DNA from: Orbicella franksi
Taxonomy: Eukaryota
DNA: 64,000 nt
Assembly: GCA_964199315.1 (NCBI GenBank)
Contig: OZ116707.1
Coordinates: 8,742,001-8,806,000, forward strand
Reading direction: 5' to 3'
The translations under genes were made by a program, and so were the position numbers. Shown piece by piece: positions 1-21,989 of this stretch; position 1 is the stretch's first letter, and each line of letters begins with the position of its first letter. Below the pieces are notes generated by a model, which did no database searches, was not told the origin of the DNA, and was given only the letters and a program-made list of their open reading frames with translations.

Positions 1-687
1 GTGTCATGGAGCAGAGATGAAGAATCTGATGGAGAAACTTTGTCCACACCATATCAAAAACAAAGAGAACAGTTGTGCAGAAACTGGGAGGTGTTAAGGG
101 TGCCCCTTACTTCAGTCATCTCTCAGGATGGAAGGTTTCATCCAGCCTAAATGTGTTAAAGGTGACTGTGATAGGGACGCTCAAACTAGGTGCCAGGATT
201 GTAGCTTTGGTGCATACTATTGCACTGAGTGCTGCAATGAATTGCACAGAGTGAAACATCAGTTTCATTCCCCAGAAGTGCTTAAGGTGAGTGTTTCTCG
301 TGGTGTTTTTAGTTTAAAAAATTGCTTATAATGTTGTGAATGAACTTGTATAACTACTTATATATTCTTGACTTCTGGGACATGCAAAAATTATTGACAA
401 ATTAAACTAATGCTTAATTTTCCTAGTGCAAGTTAAGCCATGCAGGACACTGCAGTCACTCATTAAACAGTAGAATGCACAAATATATTCCTTCCTGTTT
501 TTGCGTTGTTATTTTATTAGCAGCAGGTTAATTGTTAATTAAAACCATTAACACATCTAAAGAGCTTTATAATTTGCTTCTATATTTTTGATTGGGTTAT
601 TATCCATTCCATTGGATCAAGATGTTTAAATTTCCTGCAGCCATTAGTCTTTATTTTGATGTTGAGATACAGTCATTTTTGATAAGT

Positions 688-1040
688 TAATAAAGATGGT
701 GAATTTTAAGCTTGGTAATGAAATGTGAAGGTGAATTAATCAACATGACACGAGCGTGGGACAGGAATCGAACCCATGACCTCCCGAAATTTTAAAAATT
801 CACCATCTTTATTAACTTATCACTACTCACGATGAATTCGATAGCGTTGATCCTAGCAGTATGCAGGACACCTATCATATATGAACTCAGTTAAATGACC
901 TTGCTCTCCATGAGTTCTCGTAGCTCAGTGGATAGAGCGCCCGCCCGGTGTTCGGGAGGTCATGGGTTCGATTCCTGTCCGGGACTCAGAATTTTTCTTT
1001 GTCCCACGCTCGTGTCATGTTGATTAATTCACCTTCACAG
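688..1040. repeat. tRNA-derived repeat, two head-to-head partial copies
   Basis: A-box TAGCTCAGTGGATAGAG and B-box GGGTTCGATTCC at ~920-975; 723-788 is the reverse complement of parts of 951-1039; 688-710 and 792-815 form a further inverted pair. Confidence 0.7.
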
Positions 1041-1169
1041 TCATTTTTGTTTATAATTTGTCATGACAACTAGAAAGAGAGAAAAAATATGCCAAATATG
1101 TTAATGCGTTGCAACCTGAAGATTCAGGCTCCGCAATATATAACAGGGGTGTGACGACCACATATGCAT

Positions 1170-1365
1170 GTACAGTACTTGCCATGATCAGCACTGCTAA
1201 ACGTAAGAATTAGCTTGAAGAGTTTGAAAGTCGCAGCACTCCGAGTAAGGAAAGGCTGTCCTCTCTGGCAATTCTTTATATAAGAATAAGGATGACTTAT
1301 TATTGACAATGTTCTTGCAGAATTTTTTTATGAATTGTACCTTGATTAGGTTCTTTTGTTTGTCA
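1170..1365 (+). mobile_element. hAT transposase C-terminal dimerization fragment (intronic relic)
   Basis: Broken frames give SKERLSSLAILYI...IDNVLAEF, typical of the hAT dimerization domain end. Confidence 0.45.
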
Positions 1366-4300
1366 ACAATAGGATGGATGCTGGTTGGCATATGAAGTCT
1401 CTGGCAGAGTGCTTCTGGATTACAGCCACTCTTGTAGATGTGTTAATTTGGTTGATATAACAGGTTATGTCATTTTTAAAAGTTTTCTTATATGGCGACA
1501 GTTCCTTAGGTTATTTTTTTATTATAAAAAACATTGTAAAGAGATAATTAGAGGTTATTTGTTAAACCTTGGAATGAATTATTTTGTTGATTTCTTTCCT
1601 CTCCCAGTCCCCCACTTGAGGTTCTTCTTGGTTTATTCAGCAGATGTCAAAATATCAAAATATAAATAGTTATCATCTGTCACATAAGGCCTTCTAAAAT
1701 TAGCTTTTGGCATGTTAATTATTCAGTTGAGCATGCTGAACACAGCTTGTAAATTTCTCATTTGTAGTTTCATCTCTCAACTTAATTGCTTAAAGGACAA
1801 TTTTTTTTAGAGTTTTATCTGAACATAATTAATAAACACCACTTGGCTTTGAATTGAATTTTCTACAGTTGTCAGTATCACAATCCTTCAGAATATGTCA
1901 TTTTTCTGTCAGTGGTATTATTTTCCTATAGATGTGATTTGTGGTTGTACCTGATCACTTTAATTTATTTATTAATTAATGAAATGTTGTGCTTATTAGT
2001 GTTGGAGTTAAAAGAAAATATTACTGGCATCATTTTCAGCATATGAAGTCTCAGGCAGAGTGCTTTTGGATTGCAGCCACTCTTGCTCATCCAGATATTA
2101 TAGATGTTTTACTGTGCATACAGTAGATGTAATAGTTTGTGGCTATTTTAAAATAGGTCAAAGTCAAATAGAACTAGCTAATCTGTTTTGCTTTTAAACA
2201 TTTCTGTTCTGTTATCTTTACATTTAGGTTGCCATCATGAAATTTCTCTCATTTGCTGTGCATGCCAGACTGTTGCAGAAAGTCTGTTGTTGCATGGCTT
2301 GTGGCCTGCAACACACTGTCGAGCCCACCTTGGCTTTCACTATGGAGTTAACTGGGCACTAGCCCTGATGATGGAATGCCAAGTGTCTCTGTATGACTTC
2401 TGCAGAGCACTGGAATTTTTCAAAAACCCTCTTTTAAAGGTACAATATTGTATGTTATGTTTTCCTGCTGTTATTATATGTTCTGATTGCTATAATTGGA
2501 ATTAACTGATACATTCCCTTTAAATTAATGGCTACTTTTTTTTGTTTCACATTAGAAAAGGACAGTGTACGAGCAGTTACTTGACAGCTTTGAAGAATTC
2601 AGGCACGTGTAAATCATATCAATTTATTGTTTTTCTAAATTTTTACTTTACAAGTGATTTACTTGTGTCGTTGTTGTTAAAAATACTTTATTCTTTTTCA
2701 GTTTGATATCCTGGCTGAGGCATTTTGTTACTTGAGGTGGAGCAATTTGTCCAAAGTTTAAAAATTTAATACTAACTGTTTAACTTTTAGGTATTATGTT
2801 AAAGCTGGCTCTTGGTACAATTGGGAAGAGGAAAATTGTACAGCTAGAGCCCCATACTGTCCAGCTTGTCCTAAGGTATTCAACTATCTCAAAATAGAGT
2901 AAACAACAGTTATTGAATATAATATTATTAATAATATTTTATACCAGTTGATTCATTATATTTTGAACTTTTAGCATTGAAATGCTTCAAGAGCGGATCA
3001 GCGTCCATGATTTCATGACAATTGGTACATTGTAATTTATGAAAATGACAAAGTAGACTGTTTGTGAACAGTGTATTTGGTTTAATTCTCAGGAAAATGG
3101 AAAGTTGTTTGTCTCTATTGATGCTTGTTTTGGTCTGCCAAGAAAGAAGACATCTGGTGCTAGCTATTGAAGTCCTTTAAGCAGCAACATGTTCTTTCAC
3201 AACCAAGAGCATGTTGATAACTTTAGGGCCAGTTATCCTTCTTCAAAGAATGATTCAAAGAAGGTTTATCTTCCAATACATACTTACATGTATCAACAAC
3301 TATTAACTGTAATTATTTTTGTAAACCAGCAGACAAAAAAATTCCTCTCGACCATTGATTTTCCTTTTCATTATAATTCTAGAGGAATAAAGTTGTCCAT
3401 GTATATCCTAAAGTACACAGCCAAGATCTTTATCCATAGTAATTAAGTTACAAATAATATAATATTATTCTTACTGTACAGTTTGTGAATATGTATTTTT
3501 ATTCCAGATGTTTATTGGTAATCCTTTTTTTTTTTCACTGTCAGGATTGCAGTCATTTTCAGGCAGGCTCTGCAATCCAGTCAAAAAGTAAATTTGATGC
3601 ACTGGATGAGACAGCTGTTGGCAGTTTGTGCTGTAAACATGGCTTCCCCATGAAGTTTCTAAATTTAAAGGGTGGTGAAAGGTGAGATGCTCATCACCAA
3701 CTGTTGCTACATGTACATTTTTAATGCACATAGTTGTATATATTTAAAGTTAAACATTGTATCAATTGATATCTGATATCTTTTTTGTTGTAGGTTGGGA
3801 TATGCAGTTTATCTGCTCAATGATCTTCTTGCTTCTAAGGGAGATGGGCTAGAAATACATTTCGTGTATGACATCTGTTGTCTTCTTGATTCTCATCTCA
3901 AAGTGAGTACATTTTAGTTTGTATTGCATATACATACACACTGCTCAAGAAATTCAATGGCAGTGGTCTTAATGAGTTTAATATTTTATGAAATGGAATG
4001 ATGAAATGCAAATAATTCATGCATAATTCAGTTTTTATGTTCAGTAGATTGAAAGACCTTAACATGTTCATGTGAAGGGATCCCCAGTATTTACTTCTTA
4101 TGATTTAGCCGTCTAACTTGGAATTTCAGTTTAAACTCATCTAGAATAACTTAGCAGTTTTAATAGACTACTGTCAATCATAATGTATATATCTTTAGCC
4201 TAACCTTACCTAGCAGACTGTGTTAAAACAGGAAATTGCAAAGTGTCTCAAAGTCCATCAACTTTTTCAGAGTGGCTTCCACTATGAAAAGAACATTAAA

Positions 4301-4633
4301 TAAATTAGGAGTAAAAATTGTGTAAATTGCCAAATATATTCCCTGGGTATATCCACTTAGTGGCTCTTTTCCCTCACTTTTTACAAATAGACCATATTCG
4401 TATTCTCGGTATTGGACTGGAACTGGCTTGCAATGGAGGCTCATGTGGGGAAATATCATTAAAAAGAGATTACCGTATTTACTCAAATAAGCGCTGCCCC
4501 TGAATAAGCGTCACCCTCAATTAAGCGCCGCACATGGGGTCAAAAAGTTAATAAGCACTGCAGCTGCGGTGCGGCGCTTATTCAAGTATTTTATAAGATG
4601 ATAAAAATACACTGTACTCGCTGCAATGCGGTT

Positions 4634-5113
4634 CTAAGCCAGCATTGGGAATTTATTTTCATCAAAAGTGATGTTTTTCAGTTCAAAGTGAGTACATCTC
4701 GACGTTCTTTCATTCAGTTCTCTCTTCAAAATCTTCGCGTTCTTCAATTCTTGTGTGAAGGCTGTAAACTTTGCCGGTACGACAAGACCAACCTCCCTCT
4801 TTCCCTTCCCTGTAACTGTTGCAGTAAGAAGATTGTCAGCGTTTGCTTGTAAGAAGAAGGTCAACAAATGCGATAGTTCTATCGGTACATGGCCAGCAAG
4901 AGTATTTTCAGCGTCTGGGCATTCATGTGTCACGTACAGGCCGATTGCGTTGATGTCATATTCTTTGGCTTCGGCCCTTTTATCTTCTTCACAGTGTAAC
5001 ACTTGGTTGATTTCAGGTTTCCATGACTGTTTATACACATGGTGTCCTCTGATGACTGTCTCGAAAGATACTCTGTAATACATCTTGTATTGAACTGGGG
5101 AGACTCTTGCCAT
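4634..5113 (-). CDS. HIRAN-like domain protein carried inside the pogo element
   Basis: Open 159-aa ORF with VIRGHHVYKQSWKPEINQVL...YDINAIGLY...LAGHVPIELS, matching the HIRAN pattern. Confidence 0.7.
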   Translation of the reverse strand: MARVSPVQYKMYYRVSFETVIRGHHVYKQSWKPEINQVLHCEEDKRAEAKEYDINAIGLYVTHECPDAENTLAGHVPIELSHLLTFFLQANADNLLTATVTGKGKREVGLVVPAKFTAFTQELKNAKILKRELNERTSRCTHFELKNITFDENKFPMLA

Positions 5114-5271
5114 TTTTGCGATGTTTCTGAGTGGTAAATATTATTCTGCCAAGCGCTCAAATCTGACACTGCAGTGCTGAAGCTCCAGAGAAACCCTACT
5201 GACCTGCTTTATTAAATCCAACCAATCATGGCAAATCAGGCACGTCTCGGAAATGACCCATTACAGATAAA

Positions 5272-5530
5272 GGCTGCGAAATAATACCCTTGACTTGTCG
5301 CGTAACATTGTTCCGTTGCAAGTTTTGGGTCGATGCCTCACATTTTTCAGCTTGTCACGCACCAAAAACATTTGTTGCGGGTTGAAGAAATTTGTTGCAA
5401 AAAGTAGAGCACGGGTCTACTTTGAGCAACAAATTTTGACTTTCTTGCTCATTTTTCTTTCAACTTGTCACGCAACAAACGTGCTCCTGGTACACAAGTT
5501 GAGGGTTTTTGTATCTCGTATTTCGCCGCC
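5272..5530. mobile_element. MITE nested in the pogo element
   Basis: TIR GGCTGCGAAATA / TATTTCGCCGCC (11 of 12 match) with a TAAA duplication at 5268-71 and 5531-34. Confidence 0.7.
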
Positions 5531-5581
5531 TAAAATAACTTACCACACACACTGAATGATACTTGACTATCAAGCGTGCTT

Positions 5582-7022
5582 GGTTGAGAGAATGTCAGAC
5601 ACGAATAAGGAGGTGATTTCCCACAAGGGGAAAACATTGAAGAAATACAATTTGTCGTTCAAGAAAGAAGTCATTACTTATGCTGAAATTAATGGCAATC
5701 CACCTGCTTCCAGGCAATTTTCAGTTGATGAAAGGAGAATAAGGGAATGGCGAGCTACCAAGAGTAATATAGAAGGTCTGCTTGGGACGGCCGCCAAAGC
5801 AAAGCAAAGATCCAGACTAGATGGTGGGAGAAAACCTTTAAGCGCAAAACTTGAAGGGGTCATGCTAGAATGGATAGAAAGTAGGCGTTCTCAAGGGTTA
5901 AGAGTCTCGTGTAAGCTCATAATGAAGAAAGCAGAGATAACACATCGCGATATGACGGAAAACAACCTTGTGGACGGCGACGACTTCAAAGCTTCCAGAG
6001 GATGGCTTTGCAGATTCATGAAGTGAAATGGGTTGTCACTGAGATGAAAAACCTCCGTCGCTCAGCAAGAGCCAGAAAGAATGGTAGCTAGACTTGTATC
6101 GTATGTAATCCAGGTTAGAAGGCTATAAGAGAAACACAAGTACAGACCATCTGACATAATAGCAATGGATGAAACCCCAGTTTGGTGTGACATGATTTTG
6201 GAAACAACTGTTGACACAACAGGAAAGAAAACTATTTCTCTGAAATCAACCGGTCACGAAAAAGTGCAAGTATCAGTTTGTCTAGCCGCAAAGGCTGATG
6301 GAACTAAACTGAAACCTATGGTGGTTTTTAAAGGGGAGAAGCGAGAAGTTGCGGCTTTGAAACAAGAATTTCAAAATTGCGTGGTTGTTGCAACTTCTGC
6401 GAACGGATGGATGGATACTGAGCTAACCCAAGTCTGGATTGACTTTGTTGTTGGAGCATTTGCATTCAATCGAACGCTGTTAGCCTGGGATTCCTATGAA
6501 TGCCACATGGAGGACAAAATCACCGAGTCATTGAAGTCTAAGAAAGTTGACCGTGTAATTGTGCCTGGGGGCTGCACAAAGTACATCCAGGCACCAGATG
6601 TCAGTTGGAATAAGCCTTTCAAGGCTGTGTGTACCGAAAAATACGATGAATGGCTGGGAACTGTAGGAATTCACGAAGAAACGGCTGCTGGAAACTTGAG
6701 GGCTCCACCAAAGAGGGCCATTCTACAGTGGATTCTTGATGCATGGGCCGAGCGGCCAACAGAGGTCATTAAGGAGTCTTTCCGAAGCTGTGCTTTAAAC
6801 CTCCCTGTTGACAGTTCATGCGACGATGTTATTCATTGTTTCAAAGACGGCCAGCCATGTAGCACTGGAAAAGTTATGCTTCCCTCACAGCTAGAGATCT
6901 TGAGTGAGCCAGCCAATGCCAATCCTTTTGATACTACAGATTCTGATGTAGAAGCGTACCCACCACCGTTGGAACTTCTAGACTCTGACCAAGAGGGGGA
7001 TAGTGACATTGAAGTTGACTGA
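5582..7022 (+). pseudogene. pogo transposase (Brinker-type DBD, CENP-B HTH, DDE_1), with in-frame stops
   Basis: YNLSFKKEVITYAE, FKASRGWLCRFMK, MDETPVW, LLAWDSYECH, IQAPDVSWNKPFK; stops at 6024, ~6045 and ~6127 interrupt one continuous frame. Confidence 0.9.
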
Positions 7023-7930
7023 AGATACCGGGTATTAGTAGATACCAGAAGAAAACGTCCAATAACTATGTGACTACAGGACGTCTAAGTTTGTTGTGTT
7101 TGTAAAAGTGCTTGAGAGAAACTGGACTACTTTTAAATGCACAGACTAAGACAAAGTGCATCCTGTGTTAGATCTTGTGAACTTTCAGCAACAGTCAGGA
7201 CATTGACATCGAGTGAAGCGTTGTTGAAAACCTGCAGAAAAGTATTCATGAGGCTGTTATGAAAGCCAAAACTTAGGTTAACTTCAAGCCTGTAAGCCAT
7301 GAAAAATACTCATGAAGTAAATTAAATTGTACAATCAAAATATTTTGTTTTTTTGGTATGAGCCTTGTAAATAAGCGCTGCCTTCGAATAAGCGCCGCCC
7401 TCGAATGAGCACTGCACCGGAGACACGAAAAATTAAATAAGTGCTGCAGCGCTTATTTGAGTAAATACGGTAATGTAATTTGCATTTGAAAAGACTCCCC
7501 TCATTGGCCTCAGATGCAAGCTAGTTCCAGTCTGATACCAGGAATACGAATATGGTCTATTGGATTGGGTTTTAAAATGGTTGCTTTTTGTGGCAGTTGG
7601 AGGTTGATCAGAGACACTGGAGCAAGATTGGGAACCAACAACTTCCACTGTGTAAAATTCAAGATATCAGCATTAAATTCCACAATATGTTGTACATCTG
7701 TTGTTTCTCACTTTGCAGAAACAGAAATTTGTAGACCTTGTAGCTAATATACAGATGGCCTGTCCCCAGTTTCATGTATATGGCCAGGTGCTACATGTCA
7801 GGTTAGGAAGAGCATAAAAGTAATGTAGATTATCTAAATATTTTTGAATGTTAAACTTGTATACATTCATTCCAAGGGACCTGATAACTGACTGAGAATT
7901 TTGAGTAGAATATTGCATTTGTGTCAAATT

Positions 7931-8180
7931 AATAATAATAATAATAATAATAATAACTTTATTTATCCTGGTAAAGACTGGTCAGTCGATCAAGATATAG
8001 ATTGACTGGTATTAATCGGTGACCAGTATAAAGAGCATCAAAAAAGTCAATAAAGAAATTACAGGCATAGAATTTACAATTACAAAATCTAAAAAGTATG
8101 AATTATATACAAAAATTTAAATTTAAATTTTACAAATTCAATCTAATAATATGATTGTAAATCTACATTTTTTTTGTACC
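7931..8180 (-). mobile_element. LINE-like 3' tail fragment with (AAT)n
   Basis: (AAT)8 followed by ACTTTATTTATCC, resembling the reverse-oriented 3' end of a CR1/L2 element. Confidence 0.35.
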
Positions 8181-11100
8181 TATACATGTAGCTGCTGTAT
8201 AGTCCATGTAGATTGGAAGGATGGGGTTTGGTTGATGGAGAAATGTTGGAGAGGCTTTGGTCATACCTTGGCCTATTTAGAAAGATGACCAAGGAGATGT
8301 CATCAAGTCATAGGGAGGATGTATTGTCCGATGCTTTATTCTACCTTGCAAAAAGGCTTAAATCCAGAATAGGTAGGACAACATAAACTGTGGTGCATAT
8401 TAAAGTATTTAACTTTACCAAGTATCCATCATGCATCTATCCATCTATCCTTCTATAATTATAGTTACTGCAATGCATTTTGACTTGGAGAAAGCAATGA
8501 ATATTTCTTTCCAGCATATTCGCACTGTAGGTGATTTCAAATACCGATCTGCCTTTCTATCTTTGCTTGTAACACCTGCAGTCTCACTTCTAATAAATCA
8601 GAGCAAGAGAATTTCTGACCTTTCTAACTCTGCCAAAATGGAATTGGACGAACTTCAGAAAAAGCCACCTAATAAGTTTGTTTTCTTTTTTTTTCTTTTT
8701 CTGTTTTTATGTACTTTGGTTGGGCTAGGTTACCTGGCTGGGTGTGTAAAGGACAAATAAGGAATTGTTAATGGTACAACTCTTGACAACTTCCAGCTTG
8801 TATCTTCGAGACATTCAGTTGAGTGCATTTTATTTTAAAGATCATTTGTGAGCATTATCACCTTTTGTTTGATTAAATTTACATGTACAGAGATATTGTA
8901 TTGTTTATTGTCTACTTCCATTGACAAAGCAAATGATTTTACAATGGAAGGAAAATGAAGCAGATATTCTTAAGAAGTCAAACGCAGATAACGGTATGTT
9001 TTTCCATAACTATTTTTCCTACATAATTTTTATAGCTTATTTTGCAACATAGAGTACACAGTTAAGTGTACGTGAATATAGATTTTTTTTTTAGTCAATC
9101 ACTTGTCTTGTTGGTTCAATAGACCTCAATAAGGCCCTATGTTATTATGCAGTGTATGTCGTTGAAAATGGCTTTATGTAGCACTAGATTGTCTTGTTTC
9201 TTTACAGTTGACTTGGGACCTCATGCATGGGTATTATCCTATTTTCCCCTCTTACAGCAATACTATTTGACACGGTAAGAGAACATTATATTTGTTTATT
9301 TTCATAAAGCTTTCTAAGGTCCGTTTTTGTTTTATGTTTTATAAGTCATGCAAGAAACAAACAAATGACCAAAATAATACAGAAGTACCTAGTTAGTCTA
9401 CTTGGGAAACTTCCTTAAGTGTTAAAGAACAACTAAAGAACAAGGAAGATAGGGCAACCTTACATGACTCCTAAAACGATATTGAATGTGCCGACGACCC
9501 CTACATTTTATGGTCCAAAACGGCTGGGTCAACGTTAATCTTTATAATATTACTTATAAAAATAATAAAGAATACTTTTTAATAGTGACGGTTGCAGTGA
9601 CAGTGAACGTAGCGAGGGTGACGGTGATAGTGATGGTGATAGTAATAGTTTGTTTGTTTTGTATTGTTTCTCACACACAGTGACAGTCTTGCGAGTGGTG
9701 CGGGTGGTTCGCAAACTCTTCACCTCATTGGACTTATGAACAAGTTAGTATAAACAAGAGGCGGTGTTTTCTTCAAATAGCAATTAAAAAAAACTGTTCT
9801 CTCTTTTCAATTTGTTCCAAGTACTGAGACCCTTTTTCCGTTCTTTTTTTTTTAACTTTTTTTTTTACAGTATCAATGAATGCCTCCTCAAGATGGAACA
9901 CCAGAATAATATCCAAACACGTTGGTTGCCATCAGATGCTCAGTATCAGTCTAGTTTGATCACCACCGAAGCGGTTAAAGCAAAGCAGACTCTGGATATG
10001 ATGCTTGTTTCTGGTAGAAGACGTTGGTTTCTCCTTTCCCTAAAGAAGAAATATACAGGTATATTTTGCTTGTTCAGGAGTGTGGGGTAGCTATAATACA
10101 TACGATTGGAACAGGTGAGAGAAGTATGTCCTTGAAAAAACACATTTATTTCTCACCTCCAGCTGCAGTACCTCGAATCATTGGAACTATTTTGCGCACC
10201 ATTATTGTCAGATATAAAGAATTCTACGTAATCTTGGACCTTTAAGTAAGACGTTTTCAATTTGATTACTTTTGGATGGGTTTTGCTGATTATTTTTTGA
10301 CATTCCTTTTTCAGATGGACAGGCTCAAGCAAAACGGTTGGCGAAAAGTATCACCAGCGAAACCAGCAACTTAAAGAAACAACTTAAGAAATATAACTCC
10401 TCTGTTGAAATCCTTAACCAAAAGGGGCACTCTTCATTCAAACCCCTCACTTGGGAAGAAGCAAGTGTTGTCAGCAGTAGTATCTACTCAATTAACTTCC
10501 CAGATGACGATCAGTTTCCTTTGGTTGTTAAACGAGCTGCTGTTGACGCCCACACCTTAGTTAGAGACCCAGTATTTGAAAGAAGAAATGGCTAATGTAA
10601 TTACCACTTTTTTCAATGAATGTCTACTGCTGGAAAGCCGCCTTTCTACATTGAGATCATATGAGCAATGTGAAACTTCTAACTTGTTAAAAGGTCTGCT
10701 CTCAGTTTTGAAAAGGGATCTTAATTATGAGCGTGTACATCTGTCCACAGCATGTAATCTATTTAACCAGTTGTGTACCCCTTCACGGCAAATTAGGAAT
10801 TACATGGCTGATTTTGTTGACTCTGAAACAATTCATGAGGAGGTTGTTTTTGAAGATAATGCCAGCGATGATGACGAGAACGATTTTAGTGACGAAGATC
10901 TCGATAATGGGATGTATTAAACGTTACTGATGAACAGTGATAATGAGGATGGCAGCATTGCCTATTGTATACAATTTTTTTTTGTAATAAGCCGAGTCCA
11001 GGCCCTATTCTAAGTCTTATTTATTATATAAATACTGAAAAAAGATTCTAGCCAACTAGTCAAACATAGTCACCAAGAAGTCCATTTTAGTATTTAAATT

Positions 11101-11704
11101 ACTACTAGAAAATAAAACGATGTAATGTCAATCGCGTCACAAGCGTCAGACAATTCGAAATCTAAGTCCTCAATGGGAATCGAACCCATGACCTCTTATA
11201 ACCAACGCTGAATTATGGGAAGATTCTCTAGAAAAAAACACTCGCCTCCTTTTTGACATACATACAAACAATAGCCTAAAATTTGACGCAAAAATATGCA
11301 CAGAAGTTTGTCATTGGACGCGATCTCTTCCGAGAAGTAACAACAGGTCATATATTCCTGCATATTTTCACGACCTGAGGCTATTGTTTTTATTACAATT
11401 CGAATGTTTTTACACGAGGCTCAGTTCTACGCTTTTAAACGTTAAAATAAATCTGTCAATGTTGAAATCTGGTTAGTCTGTTCAAAATGTTTGTTCAAAT
11501 CAATTAAAAAGATCTATCCTGCTGAAAACGCCTGAACATTAATTGCAAATTTCGCAAACTGGGGAATTTCACCAGGGGAATATATACAATTATCATTATA
11601 TGCCTTTTTTTTCCTTCATTTTCATTGGCCGAAAGCCCACCATGTAACCTGCGAATGACTGCCCACAATCAACGGTCTGTGCATTTGTACTACCTTCTAA
11701 ATCG

Positions 11705-13810
11705 CTTAACCCCGCTTATCAGTCGTGTTTAACATAAAGTGAACTTGGGGTGTATAGTACAAGTCTGTGTATGTACTTTATATCGCTTAGTAGTTTAAAA
11801 TCATGAAATTAGTCGCGTTTTTCAGTTGTGTCTAAAATAAAGTGAACTTGGGGTGTATAGTAGAAATCTGTGTATGTAGTGTCTCGCTTAGTAGTTTAAA
11901 TCACGAAATTAGCCCCGCTTTTCAGTCGTGTTTAAAATAAAGTGAACTTGGGGTGTATAGTAGAAATCTGTGTATGTACTTTATATGGTTTAGTAGTTGA
12001 AAATCAGGAAATTAACCTCGCTTTTCAGTCGTGTTTAACATAAAGTGAACTTGGGGTGTAGAGTAGAAGTCTATGTATGTACCTTCCTCGCTTAGTAGTT
12101 TAAAATCACTAAATTAACCACACTTTTCAGTCGTGTTTAACATAAAGTGAACTTGGGGTGTATAGTACAAGTCTGTGTATGTACTTTGTATCGTTTAGTA
12201 GTTTAAAATCACGAAATTAGCCCCGCTTTTCAGTCGTGTTTAAAATAAAGTGAACTTGGGGTGTAGAGTAGAAATCTGTGTATGTACTTTATATGGTTTA
12301 GTAGTTGAAAATCAGGAAATTAACCTCGCTTTTCAGTCATGTTTAAAATAAAGTGAACTTCTGGTGTATAGTAGAAATCTGCGTAAGTACTTTATATCTC
12401 TTAGTAGTTGAAAATCACGAAGTTAATCCTGCTTTTCAGTCATGTTTAAAATAAAATGAACTTGGGTTGTATAGTAGAAGTCATTGCATGTACTTTATAT
12501 CGCTTAGTAGTTTAAAATCATGAAGTTAACCTGGCTTTTCAGTCGTGTTTAAAATAAAGTGAACTTGGGGTGTATAGTAGAAATCTGTGTATGTACTTTA
12601 TATCTCTTAGTAGTTGAAAATCACAAAATTAACCCCGCTTTTCAGTCGTGTTTAAAATAAAGTGAACTTCTGGTGTATAGTAGAAATCTGCGTAAGTACT
12701 TTATATCTCTTAGTAGTTGAAAATCACGAAGTTAATCCTGCTTTTCAGTCATGTTTAAAATAAAATGAACTTGGGTTTTATAGTAGAAGTCATTGCATGT
12801 ACTTTATATTGCTTAGTAGTTGAATATCACGAAGTTAACCCCACTTTTCAGTCATGTTTAAAATAAAGTGAACTTGGGGTGTATAGTAGAAATCTGTGTA
12901 TGTACTTTATATGGTTTAGTAGTTGAAAATCAGGAAATTAACCTCGCTTTTCAGTGGTGTTTAACATAAAGTGAACTTGGGGTGTAGAGTAGAAGTCTGT
13001 GTATGTACCTTATATCACTTAGTAGTTTACAATCACTAAATTAACCACGCTTTTCAGTCGTGTTTAAAATAAAGTGAACTTGGGGTGTATACTACAAGTC
13101 TGTGTATGTACTTTATATCTCTTAGTAGTTTAAAATCACGAAGTTAACCTCGCTTTTCAGTTGTGTTTAAAATAAAGTGAACTTGGGGTGTATAGTAGAA
13201 ATCTGTGTATGTACTTTATATCTTTAAAATATCTTTAAAATTCTACTCATCATGTACAAGGCCCTAAACGATCTGGCACCTTCATACGTTCGTGATCTTC
13301 TCACTCCTTACACTCCGTCTCGTCAGCTACGTTCATCTTCTAAAGAACTTCTTTCCATTCCGCACTTCAATTTGAAAACATATGGCGCAAGATCTTTCTC
13401 TGTAGCAGCTCCTACACTTTGGAACACTCTTCCATCTGACATCAAGAACAGCTCCTCAGTGTCCCTTTTTAAACATAAACTAAAAACGTTCCTTTTTAAG
13501 AAAGCATTTTTATAACTTTTTAGCGACATTTTTTTATTTTTACTTTATTTGTCTTAAGTGTTTTTAATATTTCTAACTGTAAAGCGCTTTTGAACTTTTA
13601 GGATATTGGCGCTATATAAATATTTTATTATTATTTATTTATTATCTCTTAGTAGTTGAAAATCAGGAAGTTAACCCCGCTTTTCAGTCGTGTTTAAAAT
13701 AAAGTAAACTTGGGGTGTATAGTAGAAATCCGTATGTGTACTTTATATCGCTTAGTTGTTTAAAATCACAAAATTAACCTCACTTTTCAGTCATGGTTCA
13801 AATTCAGTAA
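11705..13810. repeat. ~103-bp tandem satellite, about 16-17 units, with trimeric higher-order structure
   Basis: AAAGTGAACTTGGGGTGTATAGTAGAAATCTG recurs at 11736, 11839, 11939, 12042, 12144, 12247, 12350 and onward (period 100-103). Confidence 0.95.
13225..13644 (+). mobile_element. 5'-truncated L2/CR1-clade LINE inserted in the satellite
   Basis: YKALNDLAPSY...LRSS...YGARSFSVAAPTLWNTLP...FKHKLKTFLF is the RT C-terminus; 3' UTR TGTAAAGCGC...GCGCTATATAAAT and (TAT)n tail, after which the satellite resumes in register. Confidence 0.9.
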
Positions 13811-14829
13811 CATTGAGATGTACAGTAGAAATCTCCTATCGATTCATCCCCATTTGGATATTACCTCTCAGTGTGACAATGGTAACAAAGGCCTGGCTGT
13901 AAACTTGTCATGAGAAAAGTGAGGGGGTGGTCTAATTTTTTAAGCATTTAACGAAACACCTTATAATTTTGGGATATCTTTAGGGGCACGAATTTCGGCA
14001 ACTTAAATATTTCCTGGTCTCATGTATTGTCACGTGACCTGTCAGGGCTATTTATAGCTCATTTCTTTTTAGCAAAATGGCACCACTTTTTACAGTATCT
14101 AGGAAACTGGCATTAGTGTTATAGTGTTAAGACTATTATAAGTTTTATTTCTGTGTCTGAGCTTGTTGAGATTTTTTAAAACAAAAGCAGAAAATAAGAA
14201 TTTACTTTCATTGGGGGACTGGGCACTAGTATAAAAAGCCGTTTATTTTCAAAAATAATGAAAAATTTAACAAAGTCCGAGCAACAATACTTTGTTCATA
14301 ACCTTTTGAGCTATCCAGGGGCATTCAAGTTGAATGATTGCTGAAGTACAATGGTGCCATTTTCGCTCAAAGGTTTTTTTGGAAGATTCTGGCTGTCAGA
14401 ACCTAATAGTCTGGAAAAGGTTCAGGTTGGTGTAGTCAAAGCCTTAGAAGATAGACCACCCCCCTAATTTGTGGGTGCAATAAAGTGAGAGCCTAGTAAT
14501 GTTTTGAAATTTTAAAGTAAGGGTACGGAAAAAGTCAGCATGTTATGTTAGGAGCCTGGGCACTAATATAATGCCATTTATTTTGGTCTCAAACAAATTT
14601 CAATTCAACCAGGGCCAAAAAGCTTAGATTTAACCTTTTGGATTTATGTTGTAGTATTGAAGTCAACCAAGAGTTGATGTATTCTGGTTCCATTTTAATC
14701 AAACGTTCTGGCCTGAACTTCTCAAGTACGTGGCACATCAACAAAGTTTGTGATACGGTATTCCATAAATGCTGTGGCTCGTTACGCCCTAAACATGTTT
14801 GGTGCTTACTGCTGAATGCAGATTACACC

Positions 14830-15078
14830 TTCTGATAAAAAACATAAGTTGACATTAAACAGTATTCCGTCTGACAATCCAGTCGCCCTCAAATTCACGA
14901 TCGCAATAGAATTAAAAGGGCTGGTTTTTGCAGAGGGCGGAAAACCAGTGAACCCTGAGAAAAACCTCAGAACAAGTATGGGAACCATGCAACAACAAAT
15001 ACAACCCACCTATGAAACTGGTTCTGGAATTCAAACCCAGGCTACTTTGGCGGTTGTTGAGTGCTTGCACCACCTTGA
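14830..15078 (-). mobile_element. SINE-like repeat
   Basis: GGAAAACCAGTGAACCCTGAGAAAAACC...CAACCCAC...GAATTCAAACCCAGG is the reverse complement of a tRNA-head SINE pattern. Confidence 0.55.
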
Positions 15079-15180
15079 ATCCCCCACCGATAAAAGAACC
15101 ATTCTGTATCTTTGTAGCTTTGTCTCCATTATTTAATTCCTGAATTAACTTTTTTTTAAAACCAAACGGACTTTCAGCTA

Positions 15181-18100
15181 ACCTCCAAGCTTGTCTTTTC
15201 TTTTATTGGTATGCTCTTCCGTCGCTCAGTTACCAGCAGCTTGGAACTTGGCTTGATTGAACTGTTTTGACTATCGTTTAGAGGTGTCACATTTTCATTT
15301 AGTACCGCAGCTTCGCTTTCTTTGAAACAAGATGTTGATGAAAATGTAGTTAAGGGGCATCGTAAGTTCAAACACAAAGTACGGTCTCATCACCTCATTA
15401 AGCAATCATATAAGAAATATATAAAAAAGGTAATCACTGTTTAGAAAAAGATGTTCTATGTAAAATCTGCCCGAAGTTAGTTAGCGCCACCATTACAAGC
15501 CCTTACCATGAGAAGTCGGGTGTATTCTCTTAAAAAAAAGCAATCTTTCGAATCAAATATAGAGTGCTTATCAAATGCCAAAAGACGTAACAATCAAAGC
15601 AAATGTCAATTTTCTTTAATGAACTGTTTACTAATTTACATCAAGTGAAATGTTGTCTCTTTTCCAAGCTACTTATTTATTACCAGTACACTCGAATTTC
15701 TGCTACTGATTTCATAACAGGTCTGACCTTGCGTGATTCAGTCTTGAACCAAATACCTTAACATAGCATATGGCATAAACCCGTTTTCCATTTATAAACT
15801 GTGATCATCAAAAAGGCACGTTCAGTACATGAGTACATGTGTTTGTATGGTACTATAAATCTACTATGAATACAGCAGCACCCCAATGAAGGTGCCCATT
15901 TAAGCTTTAATTTCATGTTTAGATTTTTTCGATTTTGTGCATTGTTCAATCGTTATAAATCGTAATCAGCTATAACTTTTTTTAGGTAGACACGGTTACA
16001 GTAAATTAACAACGTTTTTAAGACTGTTGTGTGCTAGGCAAATAGCACCACTTAACGTAGCAAAGAAGTTGCTATATTGTGGCAAGAGATAATCTTTTGA
16101 TTGTGGACAAATCATAAATGAAAATATCGTAACAAGCCATATTTATTATCCACTTATCCATTTATTATTTCATGACCTTTAACAATGATCCTCTTTGTCT
16201 TGCTTTTGTCTCTTTGTTTTAGAATAAAGTGTTAAAGGCCCTTCAAAATGTGGACGAAGGACATATTCTACCACTAGGTAGCCTTAATCCTCCCCCTTAA
16301 TTGCCTGTCACGGGAGACTAACGTATGCGGGCTTACATCTCTATCTGGATGTAGAGGATCCTTTAACACCTCTACCTCCTTACTGAAATGCTGCTTTTCT
16401 CCTCTCTTGCTTAGATACTGCTCGGGCCAGGCAACAAAACTGCTGCTCTCCACCTCGCCCGAGTGGGTTGGATATTCCAGCCACGGTCTGATGGAAGGTA
16501 GAATTTCAGTGACCATGAGAGGAACCCAACCTTGCAGAATGTCTCTGCCGTGGACTTTTTCTTGGGATGTTACTGTCGCCTCTCCCACCGCACAGCTCTC
16601 TTGGTCAAGCATGTGAACCAGATCACCTAAAATAAAAACATTTACACAGGGCTGTTATTGTACTATAGTACAACCCATATTTTGGTTTCTGTTGTAACAA
16701 GAAAATACGTTCGCAAATATCGGAGTGCTCATATTAGACGGATTAATTAGGAGAGAACGTATGGGTTAGCACCAGGAAAACTGTGTGTAATTAGCATGTT
16801 TTGTTTTTCGTTCTAAGCAGATGTCATTAAGGTTGTTTTTGACTGTATATATGACATTTTTTGACAACAACAACAAAACGAAATACTTCCATTTATTTCC
16901 CCTTCGACCCGTGAGCATGAAATATATCAAGCCTGACTGGTAATCAGCAGGCAAAGTAAACACAGGGGACTAACCTTCTCTAAGTGCATGAGGACCAGGA
17001 ACGTTTGAGTCTACATGTGCAATAATTCCTTTAGGTTTTCATGTTCCGTTGAGCCTGAACATATAATGGAGAAGGCAAAAAGAAATAATACATAAGAAAT
17101 CTTTCATAAGAAACTTTGAAATGTAAGATCTTATTATGGACACCAAAAATTACGCCTTTTAGTTATGAGGTAGGATACTTCCTTTAAGCCAGTACGTACC
17201 TGGTACATCAGAAGCGATTGAGCTGTCTTCTTTCCTCTTGGAGCCCCTAGCCTTGGTAATTGTTGCTTCTATCTTTGGCATTTGAACTGTTAAAAATTTA
17301 ATAATTTGAACTGTTACAAACATTTTAGAGTGATTAACCGAGATGAATGTACTCTCTTTCTAACTATGGCAAAACAAGCGAAAGTCAACTGCACTTCAGA
17401 AGGCATCTATTGAACACCCTGTATAAAATTATAGAAGAGTTGCAAGATTGCTCATCAAAGACACTATAGGCCAGCTTGTACGCACCTGATTCACTGGGAA
17501 TGTCACTGCAAGCACCTGAACTGGTTTTCTTTCCCTTCGATGTGGTGGGAGTATTTTCATCCATTTGTGCTTTGGCTAAAACAATCCACATACAAATAAG
17601 TAATACAGGCAATGTACACAAATGTGTTCTTTAGAAGCCAGAGGAAACTAAAGTAAAGAGAAATTAATTTTCATTTTGATTTATTGTACTTTTTTAAGGG
17701 AGTTTTCATATATAGGGTTAACATCTTAACTTCCTTTTCTAGAGGCATCTTCCTTTTTTTCCCTTATTTTTATTTTAAATTGTATTCATAGTTTGCTTCC
17801 CGAATATGTATGTAACTCTGAATTGACATGAACTACCCTGAGCGCTGCCACTAAAAATTCTCACAGAGAAAAGTACAAATATAAACAGATGATGATCGTC
17901 TTTAATTCAATACTATTTTTATTTGTTATTTACGGGTTGGTACATACTAGCCATGGTAAACAAATCATACTCACCGAGTTTGTTTACCATGGCAGAAACA
18001 ACGAAGTTGGTTAACGTCTTGTCTTCGGCGAGATCTGCCATTTGCGGTGAATACAGTCGCTGACGTTGAGCCCCGCAAAGCCTATCCAAATGGATTGACA

Positions 18101-19382
18101 ACCCAGTTCGTCAAGTTTCTGCATCTGTCATAGTAACGTGTAACTTATGTGAGTATCGAGGAAGTAAGCAAAGACCGTATAATTGTAAAGACATATCCAG
18201 AAGAAACATTTCCTTTCTCCTAAATATACTGGTTAAATACGAACTATGGAGGGACGATTATTTTAGCACTGGAATCATCGGGGGTACCATCCATGGAAGC
18301 TGATCTACTTGTTTTAGTACTCAGTTGGTCTCAATTAACTCTCCTACCTACTCAAACTTGTTCTTGGTTACCTTTATGTCTATTACAACGCGTGCTTGAC
18401 CTCAATAAACACGACACATTTTCCAGGAATCAACTAGTGCTAGGATCATCTTCCTTTCGTGTGACATGGACTTAATAGGAGAGAGTGGATCACAGACATA
18501 TGCTTATCTCAACATGCGCAATAACTGTATCCTTACATTTGCATGTATGTTGGAAACAATTTTTCGGACCAGTTTGGTATGAGAAACTGCAGATTCTTTA
18601 ACTTGGTTGTTGCTGTTTGCATCATCTGCCCTTTTCTGATACATTTCACGCTCCTTAGCATCAAGACTCTGGTATGCCACATTGCCTCTCCTTTGTAGCT
18701 CTGCCACGCTTACCCCTTCTGCCATCATTGTTTTGGCTAGTTGAGATAAAGTAGTGGGATTAGCTCTCGAACCTTTTCAGCCCAAAAGCCCACAAGAAAA
18801 TTAAACAAACAGCATGACCACTTACCCTCCTTTCCCAAAAACTCACTCTTGAAGATAGAGAAAGCCGATTTCTTTCTTAGCTTTCCCTCGATGTAAGTTT
18901 TCGCCTCCCTAGCTGGTGGCTTGCTTCTTTCACTGCGAGGCCTCTCCTTTTTTTTCATTCCCAATCCAGTTCTGCCACGCAGAAAGTGAAATTTAGATTG
19001 TGTGCTGATAAAGCAAATGAAATCAATGCTACCAAGACCCTTTACATTGTAACACTACAACTCAGTATAACAAAAAGAAAAACACAATTTTCTAACAAAA
19101 ATGATTCATAACGTAAACTTCCACTGATTTATTACGTTTAATTCTCGACTGGATTTAACATGTAACTCCCTTTTTAATAGCCAGCAAGAAGGAATAAGCT
19201 TTACTTAAAATAGATCAATATTTTGTACAGTAATGGTTAACAACCTCTATCACTTTTTCATCAAGACCTGTGGACTCGACAGCCTCCATGATCAACTCCC
19301 TGTTGGACATAGTTGTCATGCTGCCCAGCCACAGTACTTTCAGTTTTCCAAGCTGATCGACACTAAGTTTGTTGCGTGACAT
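15181..19382 (-). pseudogene. Multi-exon homeodomain-like + HMG-box protein with a C-terminal domain resembling transposon-associated DUF8039; at least two frameshifts
   Basis: Exon 19382-19245 (MSRNKLSVDQLGKLKVLW...TGLDEKVIE) splices in phase to 18971 NWIGNE (homeodomain helix-3 W..N); then RKKSAFSIFKSEF and AELQRRGNVAYQSLDAKEREMYQKRA (HMG box); further exons at ~18105-17931, ~17590-17515, ~17290-17205, ~16970-16890 and from 16627 (KVHGRDILQGWVPLMV...SSFVAWPEQYL). The last exon (~15320-15181) is tentative. Confidence 0.6.
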
Positions 19383-19473
19383 CTAATAAAAGTTTACAGT
19401 TTATAGGTTATAACAAGCAACTACATATCCATCAATAATTCCTTGACAGTTTCGAAGTAATACTCTGAGTTGC

Positions 19474-20396
19474 ATGTGATGTAGTTGTATGCCACTAATT
19501 ATTGGTTTGTATGTGATGTAGTTGTATGCCACTAATTAGTGGTTTGTATGCGATGTAGTTGTATGCCACTAATTATTGGTTTGTATGTGTTGTAGTTGTA
19601 TGCCACTAATTAGTGGTTTGTATGTGTTGTAGTTGTATGCCACTAATTATTGGTTTGTATGTGTTGTAGTTGTATGCCACTAATTAGTGGTTTGTATGTG
19701 TTGTAGTTGTATGCCACTAATTATTGGTTTGTATGTGTTGTAGTTGTATGCCACTAATTAGTGGTTTGTTTGTGTTGTAGTTGTATGCCACTAATTATTG
19801 GTTTGTATGTGTTGTAGTTGTATGCCACTAATCATTGGTTTGTATGTGACGTGGTTGTATGCCACTAATTAGTGGTTTGTATGTGATGTAGTTGCAGCCA
19901 CTAATTATTGGTTTGTATGTTGTAGTTGTATGCCACTAATTAGTGCTTTGTATGTGTTGTAATTGTATGCCACTAATTATTGGTTTGTATGTGTTGTAGT
20001 TGTATGCCACTTATTATTGGTTTGTATGTGTTATAGTTGTATGCCACTAATTAGTGGTTTGTATGTGTTGTAGTTGTATGCCACTAATTAGTGGTTTGTA
20101 TGTGTTATAGTTGTATGCCACTAATTATTGGTTTGTATGTGATGTAGTTGTATGACAGTAATTAGTGGTTTGCATGTGTTGTAGTTGTATGCCACTAATT
20201 AGTGGTTTGTATGTGTTGTAGTTGTATGCCACTTATTAGTGATTTGTATGTGTTGTAGTTGTATGGCACTAATTATTGGTTTGTATGTGACTTGGTTGTA
20301 TGCCACTAATTAGTGGTTTGTATGTGATGTAGTTGTATGCCACTAATTATTGGTTTGTATTTGTTGTAGTTGTATGCCACTAATTATTGGTTTGTG
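19474..20396. repeat. 37-bp minisatellite, about 25 copies
   Basis: Unit CCACTAATTA(T/G)TGGTTTGTATGTG(T/A)TGTAGTTGTATG, starts at 19492 and 19529 (period 37); ATTATT and ATTAGT variants often alternate. Confidence 0.95.
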
Positions 20397-21989
20397 TCGA
20401 TCGATGAACTCGTTCTGATTTTACTCTCGACTGTGGTTGTTGTTAGTTTAAAGCATGTACTGACAGTAGAATATGCGAGTGAGGATGCAGATGTAATGAG
20501 CTCCAATATATGAAGTTAAGCTAAAGCTAAAGGTCTAAGGTTTACTGCTTCTATTTGAGATCGATTGATGAATGACCATAAACACATGCACGCACTCACT
20601 AAGTGTAAATACACCGGTCACTGAAATAATCTCTGAAGTAAGAGCGTTTGCAAACACTTACCTTTACACTGACTGATTTAAGAAGCGTCGTTAATTAAAA
20701 ACACAACTGGAACAGCGATTTGTTCACAGATGCAAATGACTTTTAGAAGAATAATCCCAGATTGAGCCCAAATGCAAATGATCGAGCAAACGCATTGTGT
20801 TGCCCAAATCATTACCCACCCTCCCAACCTAGAAAAGTAATTGCCTTGAATGTTATTCATTTACAATGCATTAGTTTACTTTGATACAACGTCTAACAAT
20901 TCCATTAGTTAGTGCGTTACAACGTGCGGAACGGTTGGTCGTGGATACACACTGACGAGCAATACTGCTAGCCATGATAACCATGAGAAAATCAATTCAT
21001 GGGTTTCCTTTACTTTTTTATATGAGTATGGGGCTCCGCTGGAGCTTTGTTATTAAAATGACTGCAAAATTTGCATCGCTTGCCCCAGGGCCCCATAATA
21101 CAGCCGAAAACAAGGCCGCTTCAGGACATAAAACCAATATGGCGGCACCAAGAAGCCTTTGCAGACTTTTCATACACCATTTTGAAAAAAACTTTATGCA
21201 TGGTCTCCACAAGCAAGGGGTGGTCCGGCCCCACTGACTCTTCAACAAACAGAGAGGAGGAGAAGCAGCAAGACTTTGTGTGGAAACCTACACTAGTCAT
21301 CCTCATTGGCACAAAAGAAGATCTTGTTGCATCCCTTAATGGCTTAGAGCAGCAGCTATTTAAAAGGTACTGTGATAAATTGCCCAAGACAAAACAAATC
21401 GATGGTGAATAAAATTAGTCCTTAAATTTTAAGGGTTACAGTTTAGTTAAATGGCTGCATGCATTATGATCTTTATTACATAGTTGTAGTTAGTTTAAAA
21501 TAGAGCACAAAGCCATTTTGTTAGTTGACCAAGGAATTCTCAGTTCCCATAACCATGTAAGTACTACCAACTGACTTATCTTTTAACAGCTAAGACCACG
21601 AAAGCTGGGCAAGTCGTAACCAAAGAGAACAAAGGTACGTACGTAGTTAACATTGCTGCAATGTTTTGAACAAGCACAAAGCCATTTTGTTAGTTGACCA
21701 AGAAATTCTTAGTTCCCATGACCATGCAATCTTTATAGTTTTTAAACAGCTACGCCTCCTTCTCCCAAGGCGAAAAAAAACTGGTGCTTCTAATTCTTTT
21801 TATTTTTCACTTGAGAATGCACTTGACCAATAGGAAATGGGAGCCAACTGAAAGCGATGTGCAGCGTTGCTAAAATTTCTATGAACGAACCTATACTGGT
21901 AAACAACTTACGTGAATTTCATATTCATGGACAGCCTAAAACATGGCTTTTAATATCATCTGACACCAAATGCTCTTCTGCAAATTACA

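Follow-up and report, generated by a model that had tools for sequence, protein, structure and literature searches.

We analysed a stretch of 64,000 nucleotides from the stony coral Orbicella franksi (NCBI GenBank assembly GCA_964199315.1, contig OZ116707.1, positions 8,742,001 to 8,806,000 of the forward strand), hereafter the window, which has a G+C content of 33-45% and contains no N. Positions 1-20937 of the window are one decayed copy of a two-gene cut-and-paste transposon of the KDZ superfamily and not two neighbouring units. In it a transposase gene on the plus strand converges on a second gene on the minus strand (gene 2), and we consider it probable that the gene-2 protein, plausibly a homeodomain-like module joined to an HMG box, serves the element as a DNA-binding accessory factor.

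Two convergent genes between one pair of ends

Related loci were gathered as the genomic contexts of public-assembly homologues of the open reading frame (ORF) of gene-2 exon 3 (E3; query ORF, window 18507-18776, minus strand). Two of them, L005 and L002, belong to a single contig of the public assembly ERZ25071792 and were merged into one locus, M2; L009 comes from assembly ERZ25067879, L003 and L004 from a third assembly and L008 from a further one. M2 is collinear with window 1-20937 over its positions 3615-20386 at 81-88% identity, and appears to be an intact relative of the window copy. It is 17.1 kb long and ends in perfect 123-bp terminal inverted repeats (TIRs; M2 3241-3363 and 20264-20386), which are flanked by the 7-bp direct repeat AACAGCC as target-site duplication (TSD) and which enclose the transposase gene, a remnant of a 103-bp satellite, gene 2 and an array of 37-bp repeats. 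The second complete copy, L009, spans 7725-19310 (11.6 kb) with TIRs of 126-128 bp and the TSD GTCAGAC. It is a deletion derivative which has lost the transposase core (M2 3923-9126) and kept gene 2, both arrays and both TIRs. An 8-bp TSD fitted neither reading of the L009 junction, and hence the duplication is 7 bp. As the TIRs and the different 7-bp TSDs of M2 and L009 lie around both genes, the two genes form one mobile unit.

The ends are shared by the other copies as well. In the alignment, the homology between the window, L001, L002 and L003 stops in all of them at window 20937 (...CGTGCGGAACGGGTG), past which the four sequences are unrelated to one another; in the window the next 7 bp are GTCGTGG. 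The terminal 128 bp of the window copy were found again, in inverted orientation, beyond the 5′ end of the KDZ gene in L001, M2 and L009. For the window copy, an inverted terminus of 123-128 bp beginning CACCCGTTCCGCACG would be expected about 375 bp before base 1. The TIRs are 85-94% conserved between copies, and the termini of the element can be written 5′-CACCCG...CGGGTG-3′ with a target duplication of 7 bp. Window base 1 corresponds to M2 3615, and thus about 375 bp of the left end of the window copy lie outside the window; an inverted-repeat scan within the window accordingly returned no pair around both genes. The order of parts is the left TIR (about 123 bp), the KDZ gene, the 103-bp satellite, the convergent gene 2, the 37-bp array and the right TIR. 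In the window these parts lie as follows.

1-10920, plus strand: KDZ transposase gene with Pfam CxC2 and KDZ matches, a pseudogene of 13 or more exons whose 5′ end lies before the window
11706-13833, no strand assigned: 103-bp satellite (Tandem Repeats Finder, TRF) between the 3′ ends of the two genes, split by an insertion of about 415 bp (13223-13637)
16274-19382, minus strand: gene 2, six exons, about 360 amino acids in intact copies, in the window a pseudogene with three 1-bp deletions
19470-20395, no strand assigned: 37-bp array (TRF), 25 copies with a TAATTA core, subterminal, about 90 bp upstream of the gene-2 ATG
20810-20937, no strand assigned: right TIR, outer end at 20937, reading ...CGTGCGGAACGGTTG in the window and ...GGGTG in the other copies

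Four other public assemblies hold five loci in which the convergent layout is seen again. Gene-2 exons followed by KDZ exons in convergent orientation were present in the window, M2, L001, L009 and L008, that is, in every locus whose downstream sequence is long and intact enough to show them. L001 has lost internal sequence and carries an inserted long interspersed nuclear element (LINE); L003 and L004, 95% alike, come from the same assembly. L008, an 11-kb contig, is a distant relative which has kept the convergent linkage of gene 2 to the CxC2 exons of the KDZ gene; its E3, E4 and E6 lie on one strand with 45-63% amino acid identity to gene 2, and the two genes stand much closer together (2167-11145) with an RVT_1 fragment between them.

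These results also bear on the alternative that the two genes are independent, i.e., that a KDZ element happens to lie beside a host gene of the homeodomain-HMG type, or that two transposons are nested, their convergence being a coincidence. The window is indeed a dense stack of transposons, with a pogo element, a miniature inverted-repeat transposable element (MITE) and a retroposon tail inside the element stretch alone, and by itself it shows one terminus. But the alternative is refuted by the two complete copies, which sit at different sites with TIRs and 7-bp TSDs around both genes. The recurrence of the layout speaks against it too, as does the absence of terminal repeats belonging to gene 2 itself in an inverted-repeat scan of the window, and we give it next to no credence. 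An earlier, sequence-only reading of the window had suggested that a lightly decayed, intron-rich KDZ transposase gene on the plus strand and a lightly decayed gene on the minus strand converge across a satellite, and that they may travel as one unit of more than 20 kb; as a check it had named the pairing and orientation of homologues elsewhere, and TIRs and TSDs shared around both genes. All of this was borne out apart from the size: the length of the window copy, about 21.3 kb, includes the nested pogo element, a MITE-like insertion and the satellite insertion of about 415 bp, and it is to nested insertions that the excess over 20 kb is owed. The outcome that would have spoken against that reading, gene-2 homologues unlinked to KDZ genes, for example beside Transposase_21 genes or as single-copy host genes, was not seen: the E3-profile search yielded no single-copy host homologue, and the one Transposase_21 ORF encountered, in L009, is outside the element.

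Two further observations concern the surroundings of the copies. L009 carries at 1-2305 an open ORF of 774 amino acids of the Transposase_21 (CACTA/EnSpm) type, which runs off the end of the locus and lies 5.4 kb outside the KDZ TIR; it was the sole Transposase_21 ORF seen and is a separate neighbouring transposon. In L003 a 21-bp tandem repeat of nine copies (6625-6820) abuts the outer end of the TIR and may be target-site context or an unrelated satellite.

The KDZ transposase gene

With no fewer than 13 exon-sized blocks of M2 mapped to window 1-10914, the transposase gene is an intron-rich one. All blocks are on the plus strand, as follows.

1-144/104-313, 1373-1495, 2221-2502, 2762-2890, 3060-3314: exon blocks mapped from M2
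3527-3682, 3777-3914, 7659-7784, 8192-8383, 8548-8757: exon blocks, continued
8891-9031, 9869-10087, 10290-10914: last exon blocks

In the exon ORFs of the window, Pfam recognized CxC2 at 2188-2505 (E 1e-5) and the KDZ core at 3485-3685 (E 2e-5) and 8213-8386 (E 9e-8); the CxC cluster family tested was PF18803 with its relatives. The corresponding exons of M2 scored 43.4 bits for CxC2 against a Pfam cut-off of 27 bits, and for KDZ (PF18758) 37.6 bits against a cut-off of 26.6 in one exon and 24.3 bits (E 3e-5) in the other. Neither a protease nor a SWIM finger gave a Pfam match in the seven M2 KDZ exon ORFs scanned, the 216-amino-acid last exon included. The gene begins about 75 bp inside the left TIR. 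The equivalent of the M2 start codon would lie about 180 bp before window base 1, and about 180 bp of coding sequence are therefore outside the window. The window exons carry at least four frameshifts: exon 1 changes frame at about 104-144, the CxC2 exon has two shifts that compensate each other, and the last exon changes frame near 10562. Since gene 2 is frameshifted as well, with two 1-bp deletions in E2 (one in an A-run, the other AAAAGA>AAAGA) and one in E4 (TTTTGC>TTTGC), the window copy is unable to move by itself.

Gene 2 and its predicted protein

The six exons of gene 2 were delimited in an alignment of five copies, and all are on the minus strand.

19382-19245, minus strand: E1
18971-18826, minus strand: E2
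18736-18537, minus strand: E3
18124-17975, minus strand: E4
17575 to about 17486, minus strand: E5
16626-16274, minus strand: E6, stop codon included

The AG/GT splice sites are kept across the five aligned copies, the exon phases (0, 1, 0, 1, 1) are mutually consistent, and intact copies read through about 360 codons. Two further blocks, 15202-14915 and 14822-14592, were considered as extra exons and set aside as non-coding, the first having no excess of third-position changes and the second being ambiguous. Substitutions in gene 2 are enriched at third codon positions, and between M2 and L003, which represent two intact subfamilies, the ratio of non-synonymous to synonymous substitution (dN/dS, Nei-Gojobori) was 0.28 overall, with 0.44 for E1, 0.08 for E2, 0.23 for E3 and 0.43 for E6. 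Judged from these substitution patterns, gene 2 is under purifying selection; it is a long-standing component of the element, not a neighbour. Exon-sized homologues were found in the ENA, JGI and Logan assemblies for E3 (17), E6 (12) and E1 (8). When the E3 profile was run with HMMER against 1.84 billion representatives it gave 25 matches, 24 of which were exon-sized ORFs, while the remaining one, the 1583-amino-acid P0027, was rejected as a spurious match to low complexity; no homologue of gene 2 outside the element, whether a single-copy host gene or any other, was among them.

As for what gene 2 encodes, a homeodomain-like helix-turn-helix (HTH) fused directly to an HMG box and followed by a small C-terminal beta-barrel is a plausible description, drawn from its predicted sequence. 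The HTH can be read in E1 and the start of E2 as MSRNKL-DDQLGKLK-LW-GGM...RDLIMEAVESTGLDEKVIK followed across the junction by NWIGNEKKRRG, and the putative recognition helix VIKNWIGNEKKRR spans the E1/E2 junction. The motif WIGNE[KR][KR]R[KR]G shows no variation, the distant L006 and L007 included. The third-best match of an E1 profile against PDB was 2da4 (E 0.95), in an alignment that keeps the register of N-terminal arm and helix 1; we take this entry to be a homeobox-domain structure, its label in the table being only hypothetical protein. The HMG box would occupy the rest of E2 and E3, where it was read by eye as RKKSAFSVFKSEFLAKE and, past the junction, AKTMIAEGVGAAEVQRRGN-AYQSL--KE-E-YQKRAD. 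Its pattern, RKKSAFSVFKSEF..(intron)..EVQRRGN.AYQSL...E..YQKRAD, has a Tyr in place of the helix-2 Trp, and an intron splits the putative box in all copies. A profile built from 25 E3 sequences was compared with 177,635 PDB sequences, and its matches were all HMG boxes (HMGB1, WDHD1; E 0.3-9) aligned in register with HMG helices 2-3. In Pfam, HMG_box was matched by the relative P0026 (E 0.063) and HMG_WDHD1 by an intact E3 (E 0.2), and an AlphaFold model of E3 alone consisted of helices only. For E6, AlphaFold modelled a small beta-barrel with a predicted local distance difference test (pLDDT) score of 81-89 over residues 11-80; the structural matches of this model were weak and scattered, so that only the term small beta-barrel can be assigned to it. 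No PHD finger or other Cys/His pattern occurred in any of the six reading frames of either M2 or the window copy. The sequence-only reading had called this a homeodomain and HMG-box gene: its place on the minus strand and its intron-rich structure stood, with six exons and conserved splice sites, while both domain labels are plausible and reached significance in no single-exon search.

The 37-bp array and a possible role for gene 2

The array next to the right end is built from the unit TTGTATGTG[A/T]TGTAGTTGTATGCCACTAATTATTGGT, whose consensus agrees between the window, M2, L003 and L009 in 36 of its 37 positions (35 of 37 for L001), and whose best-conserved stretch, TGTATGCCACTAATT, overlaps the TAATTA core of homeodomain type. 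The array counts 25 to 54 units, depending on the copy, and is confined to one end of the element and to one strand. The unique DNA of the window, M2, L003, L009 and L001 copies is only 76-82% alike, and because the 37-bp unit is nearly invariant between such diverged subfamilies it is a candidate protein-binding site. The 103-bp satellite between the two genes has counterparts in L003, L004 and L009, where related arrays occupy the equivalent place, but identity between loci is only 72-77%.

HMGB1 assists RAG, and of the HMGB1 chains which were the best PDB matches of E3 several presumably come from RAG-DNA complexes. HMGB1 also supports the ordered assembly and synapsis of the Sleeping Beauty complex (PMC5224488), for which HMGXB4 is another host factor (PMC10138897), and Nuwa/Harbinger elements encode a second, DNA-binding protein of the Myb/SANT type (PMC12730594). 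It is by analogy with HMGB1 in the Sleeping Beauty and RAG systems, and with the Myb/SANT partner of Harbinger and Nuwa, that we propose an accessory role for gene 2. Most likely, the gene-2 protein would bind and bend the DNA of the element, and the best candidate for its target would be the TAATTA array of 37-bp units adjoining one end; such binding could aid or regulate the assembly of a synaptic complex or transpososome, or the expression of the element. A narrower version, which we put forward tentatively and regard as possible rather than probable, is that the element encodes a sequence-specific architectural factor of its own, whose homeodomain-like and HMG parts would together bind the 25-54 TAATTA-bearing units and bend the DNA for synapsis or expression. 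If true, the element would bring with it an equivalent of what RAG and Sleeping Beauty borrow from their hosts as HMGB1, and such elements would be a possible evolutionary source of host regulators of the homeodomain or HMG type. In any case the homeodomain-HMG protein, together with the 37-bp unit or the TIR, makes a candidate protein-DNA pair.

Gene 2 might instead be passenger cargo, a host gene resembling a transcription factor which was captured once and has no role in transposition, or which benefits the element indirectly through host chromatin or silencing. Giant transposons, KDZ elements among them, often carry accessory genes outside the chemistry of cutting and pasting, as with TET/JBP in fungi (PMC12730594) and the transcribed genes in KDZ elements of Ectocarpus (PMC12477816). 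The E6 beta-barrel weakly resembles readers of the Tudor, PWWP, BAH and Spindlin kinds (Z 2.3-3.0), and L009 has kept gene 2 while its transposase core is gone. However, no host relative was among the 25 E3-profile matches; gene 2 has been held under purifying selection, with its position and orientation kept over about 50% amino acid divergence, and the nearly invariant TAATTA array beside it suggests a cis target inside the element. Taken together, we find the cargo explanation unlikely and favour an accessory DNA-binding factor. As for L009, it may be a non-autonomous form which still supplies or uses the accessory protein.

Several observations weigh against the accessory-factor reading, or against parts of it. 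Domain searches and fold predictions for gene 2 were made exon by exon, and in the single-exon searches no domain call was significant: Pfam gave no match for E1 or E2 in either the decayed or an intact copy, an E2 profile matched nothing in PDB, and Foldseek returned no match with the E3 model or with the E6 model. In the structural comparison of E6 the best Z was 4.2, and matches of SH3, Tudor and KOW-like type scored 2.5-3.4. The E3-profile search of the 1.84 billion representatives gave no real ORF longer than 181 amino acids. The one-sidedness of the 37-bp array is unusual for subterminal repeats bound by a transposase, and the conservation of its unit could be that of a promoter or enhancer of gene 2. 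In the window only the right terminus of the copy is readable, the left TIR and the TSD being upstream, and one further locus, L010, consists of rearranged gene-2 pieces with no KDZ sequence within 10 kb and no ends. No spliced RNA was seen: RNA-library contigs covered the gene thinly, unspliced and with no exon joints, and no read was placed from about 12% of one polyA run; expression of the window copy is thus unsupported.

Comparison with other systems

To our knowledge, KDZ elements rank with the largest eukaryotic cut-and-paste transposons and with those understood least, and good descriptions of whole elements, ends and TSDs included, exist mainly from fungi and for the Zisupton of fish. 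For an animal KDZ family whose 7-bp TSDs are like those of Kyakuja, the copies described here establish the exact ends, the TSD length, the models of both genes and the presence of a conserved partner. Our literature search returned no paper in which a KDZ element is paired with an HMG or homeodomain protein, be it in animals or elsewhere. In 2012 Bohne et al. reportedly described the fish Zisupton as an animal KDZ element with TIRs and a multi-exon transposase, and it is said to have one gene only, for a transposase with a SWIM finger and an Ulp1-type protease.

If so, the coral element resembles Zisupton as an animal member of the KDZ superfamily with TIRs and a multi-exon transposase. It differs in having a separate second gene, in showing no protease in the exon ORFs scanned and in its TSDs, which are of 7 bp in both complete coral copies; those of Zisupton, like those of Dileera, are of 8 bp (Kojima, PMC12730594). 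The fungal Kyakuja elements have 7-bp TSDs and 5′-CA..TG-3′ termini and lack TIRs, and the accessory genes reported for KDZ elements of fungi are of the TET/JBP kind, with no mention of HMG (PMC12730594), while those of the brown alga Ectocarpus carry additional transcribed genes (PMC12477816). With Kyakuja the coral element shares the KDZ core and CxC cluster, the 7-bp TSDs, the CA...TG termini, a large size and an internal accessory gene. In contrast to fungal Kyakuja it has TIRs of 123 bp, and the likeness rests on TSD length and termini; its accessory product is a small putative DNA-binding protein and not a TET/JBP dioxygenase, its host is a stony coral, and its transposase gene has at least 13 exons.

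Outside the superfamily, the pairing of a transposase with a separate, element-encoded putative DNA-binding protein recalls PIF/Harbinger with its transposase and Myb/SANT protein, and the pairing of a partner protein with repeated subterminal motifs recalls En/Spm-CACTA, where TnpD works with TnpA on subterminal repeats. In the RAG and Sleeping Beauty systems the HMG cofactors are recruited from the host; the coral element would supply the HMG box itself, in one protein with a homeodomain-like module. From all four systems the coral element differs in that its transposase belongs to an unrelated superfamily, its array stands at one end only and the function of its partner protein is an inferred one. 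For the annotation of coral genomes it follows that such homeodomain-like or HMG-like gene fragments, and such 37-bp or 103-bp satellites, belong to a transposon and are not host regulators.

Insertions in the window copy and RNA coverage

Two other elements lie in introns of the KDZ gene.

4201-7561, plus strand: pogo/Tigger-type transposon nested in a KDZ intron, with HTH_Tnp_Tc5 and DDE_1 (Pfam)
681-1180, no strand assigned: MITE-like insertion in a KDZ intron, with perfect palindromic arms and no match in M2

The pogo element has inverted arms at 4386-4497 and 7446-7561 and is missing from M2, where 7173 joins 7223. As both the pogo element and the MITE-like insertion are absent from M2, they are secondary insertions into introns. 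Within the pogo/Tigger element there is a divergent HIRAN-like ORF (4634-5113, minus strand). The MITE-like insertion, of about 500 bp, contains a tRNA-like GGTTCGATTCC box and has arms of 40, 30 and 28 nucleotides; there is a related inverted arm outside it, at 11158-11195. The depth of RNA-library contigs peaks (up to 62) at 17600-17787 and 14780-14967, with loose ends running into unrelated sequence; these peaks are probably due to short repeats expressed elsewhere and not to transcription of gene 2. The insertion which splits the 103-bp satellite (13223-13637) contains an ORF (13252-13515) resembling the C-terminal tail of a retroposon-type protein, and its homologue in L001 (17305-17577, 58% amino acid identity) adjoins a LINE.

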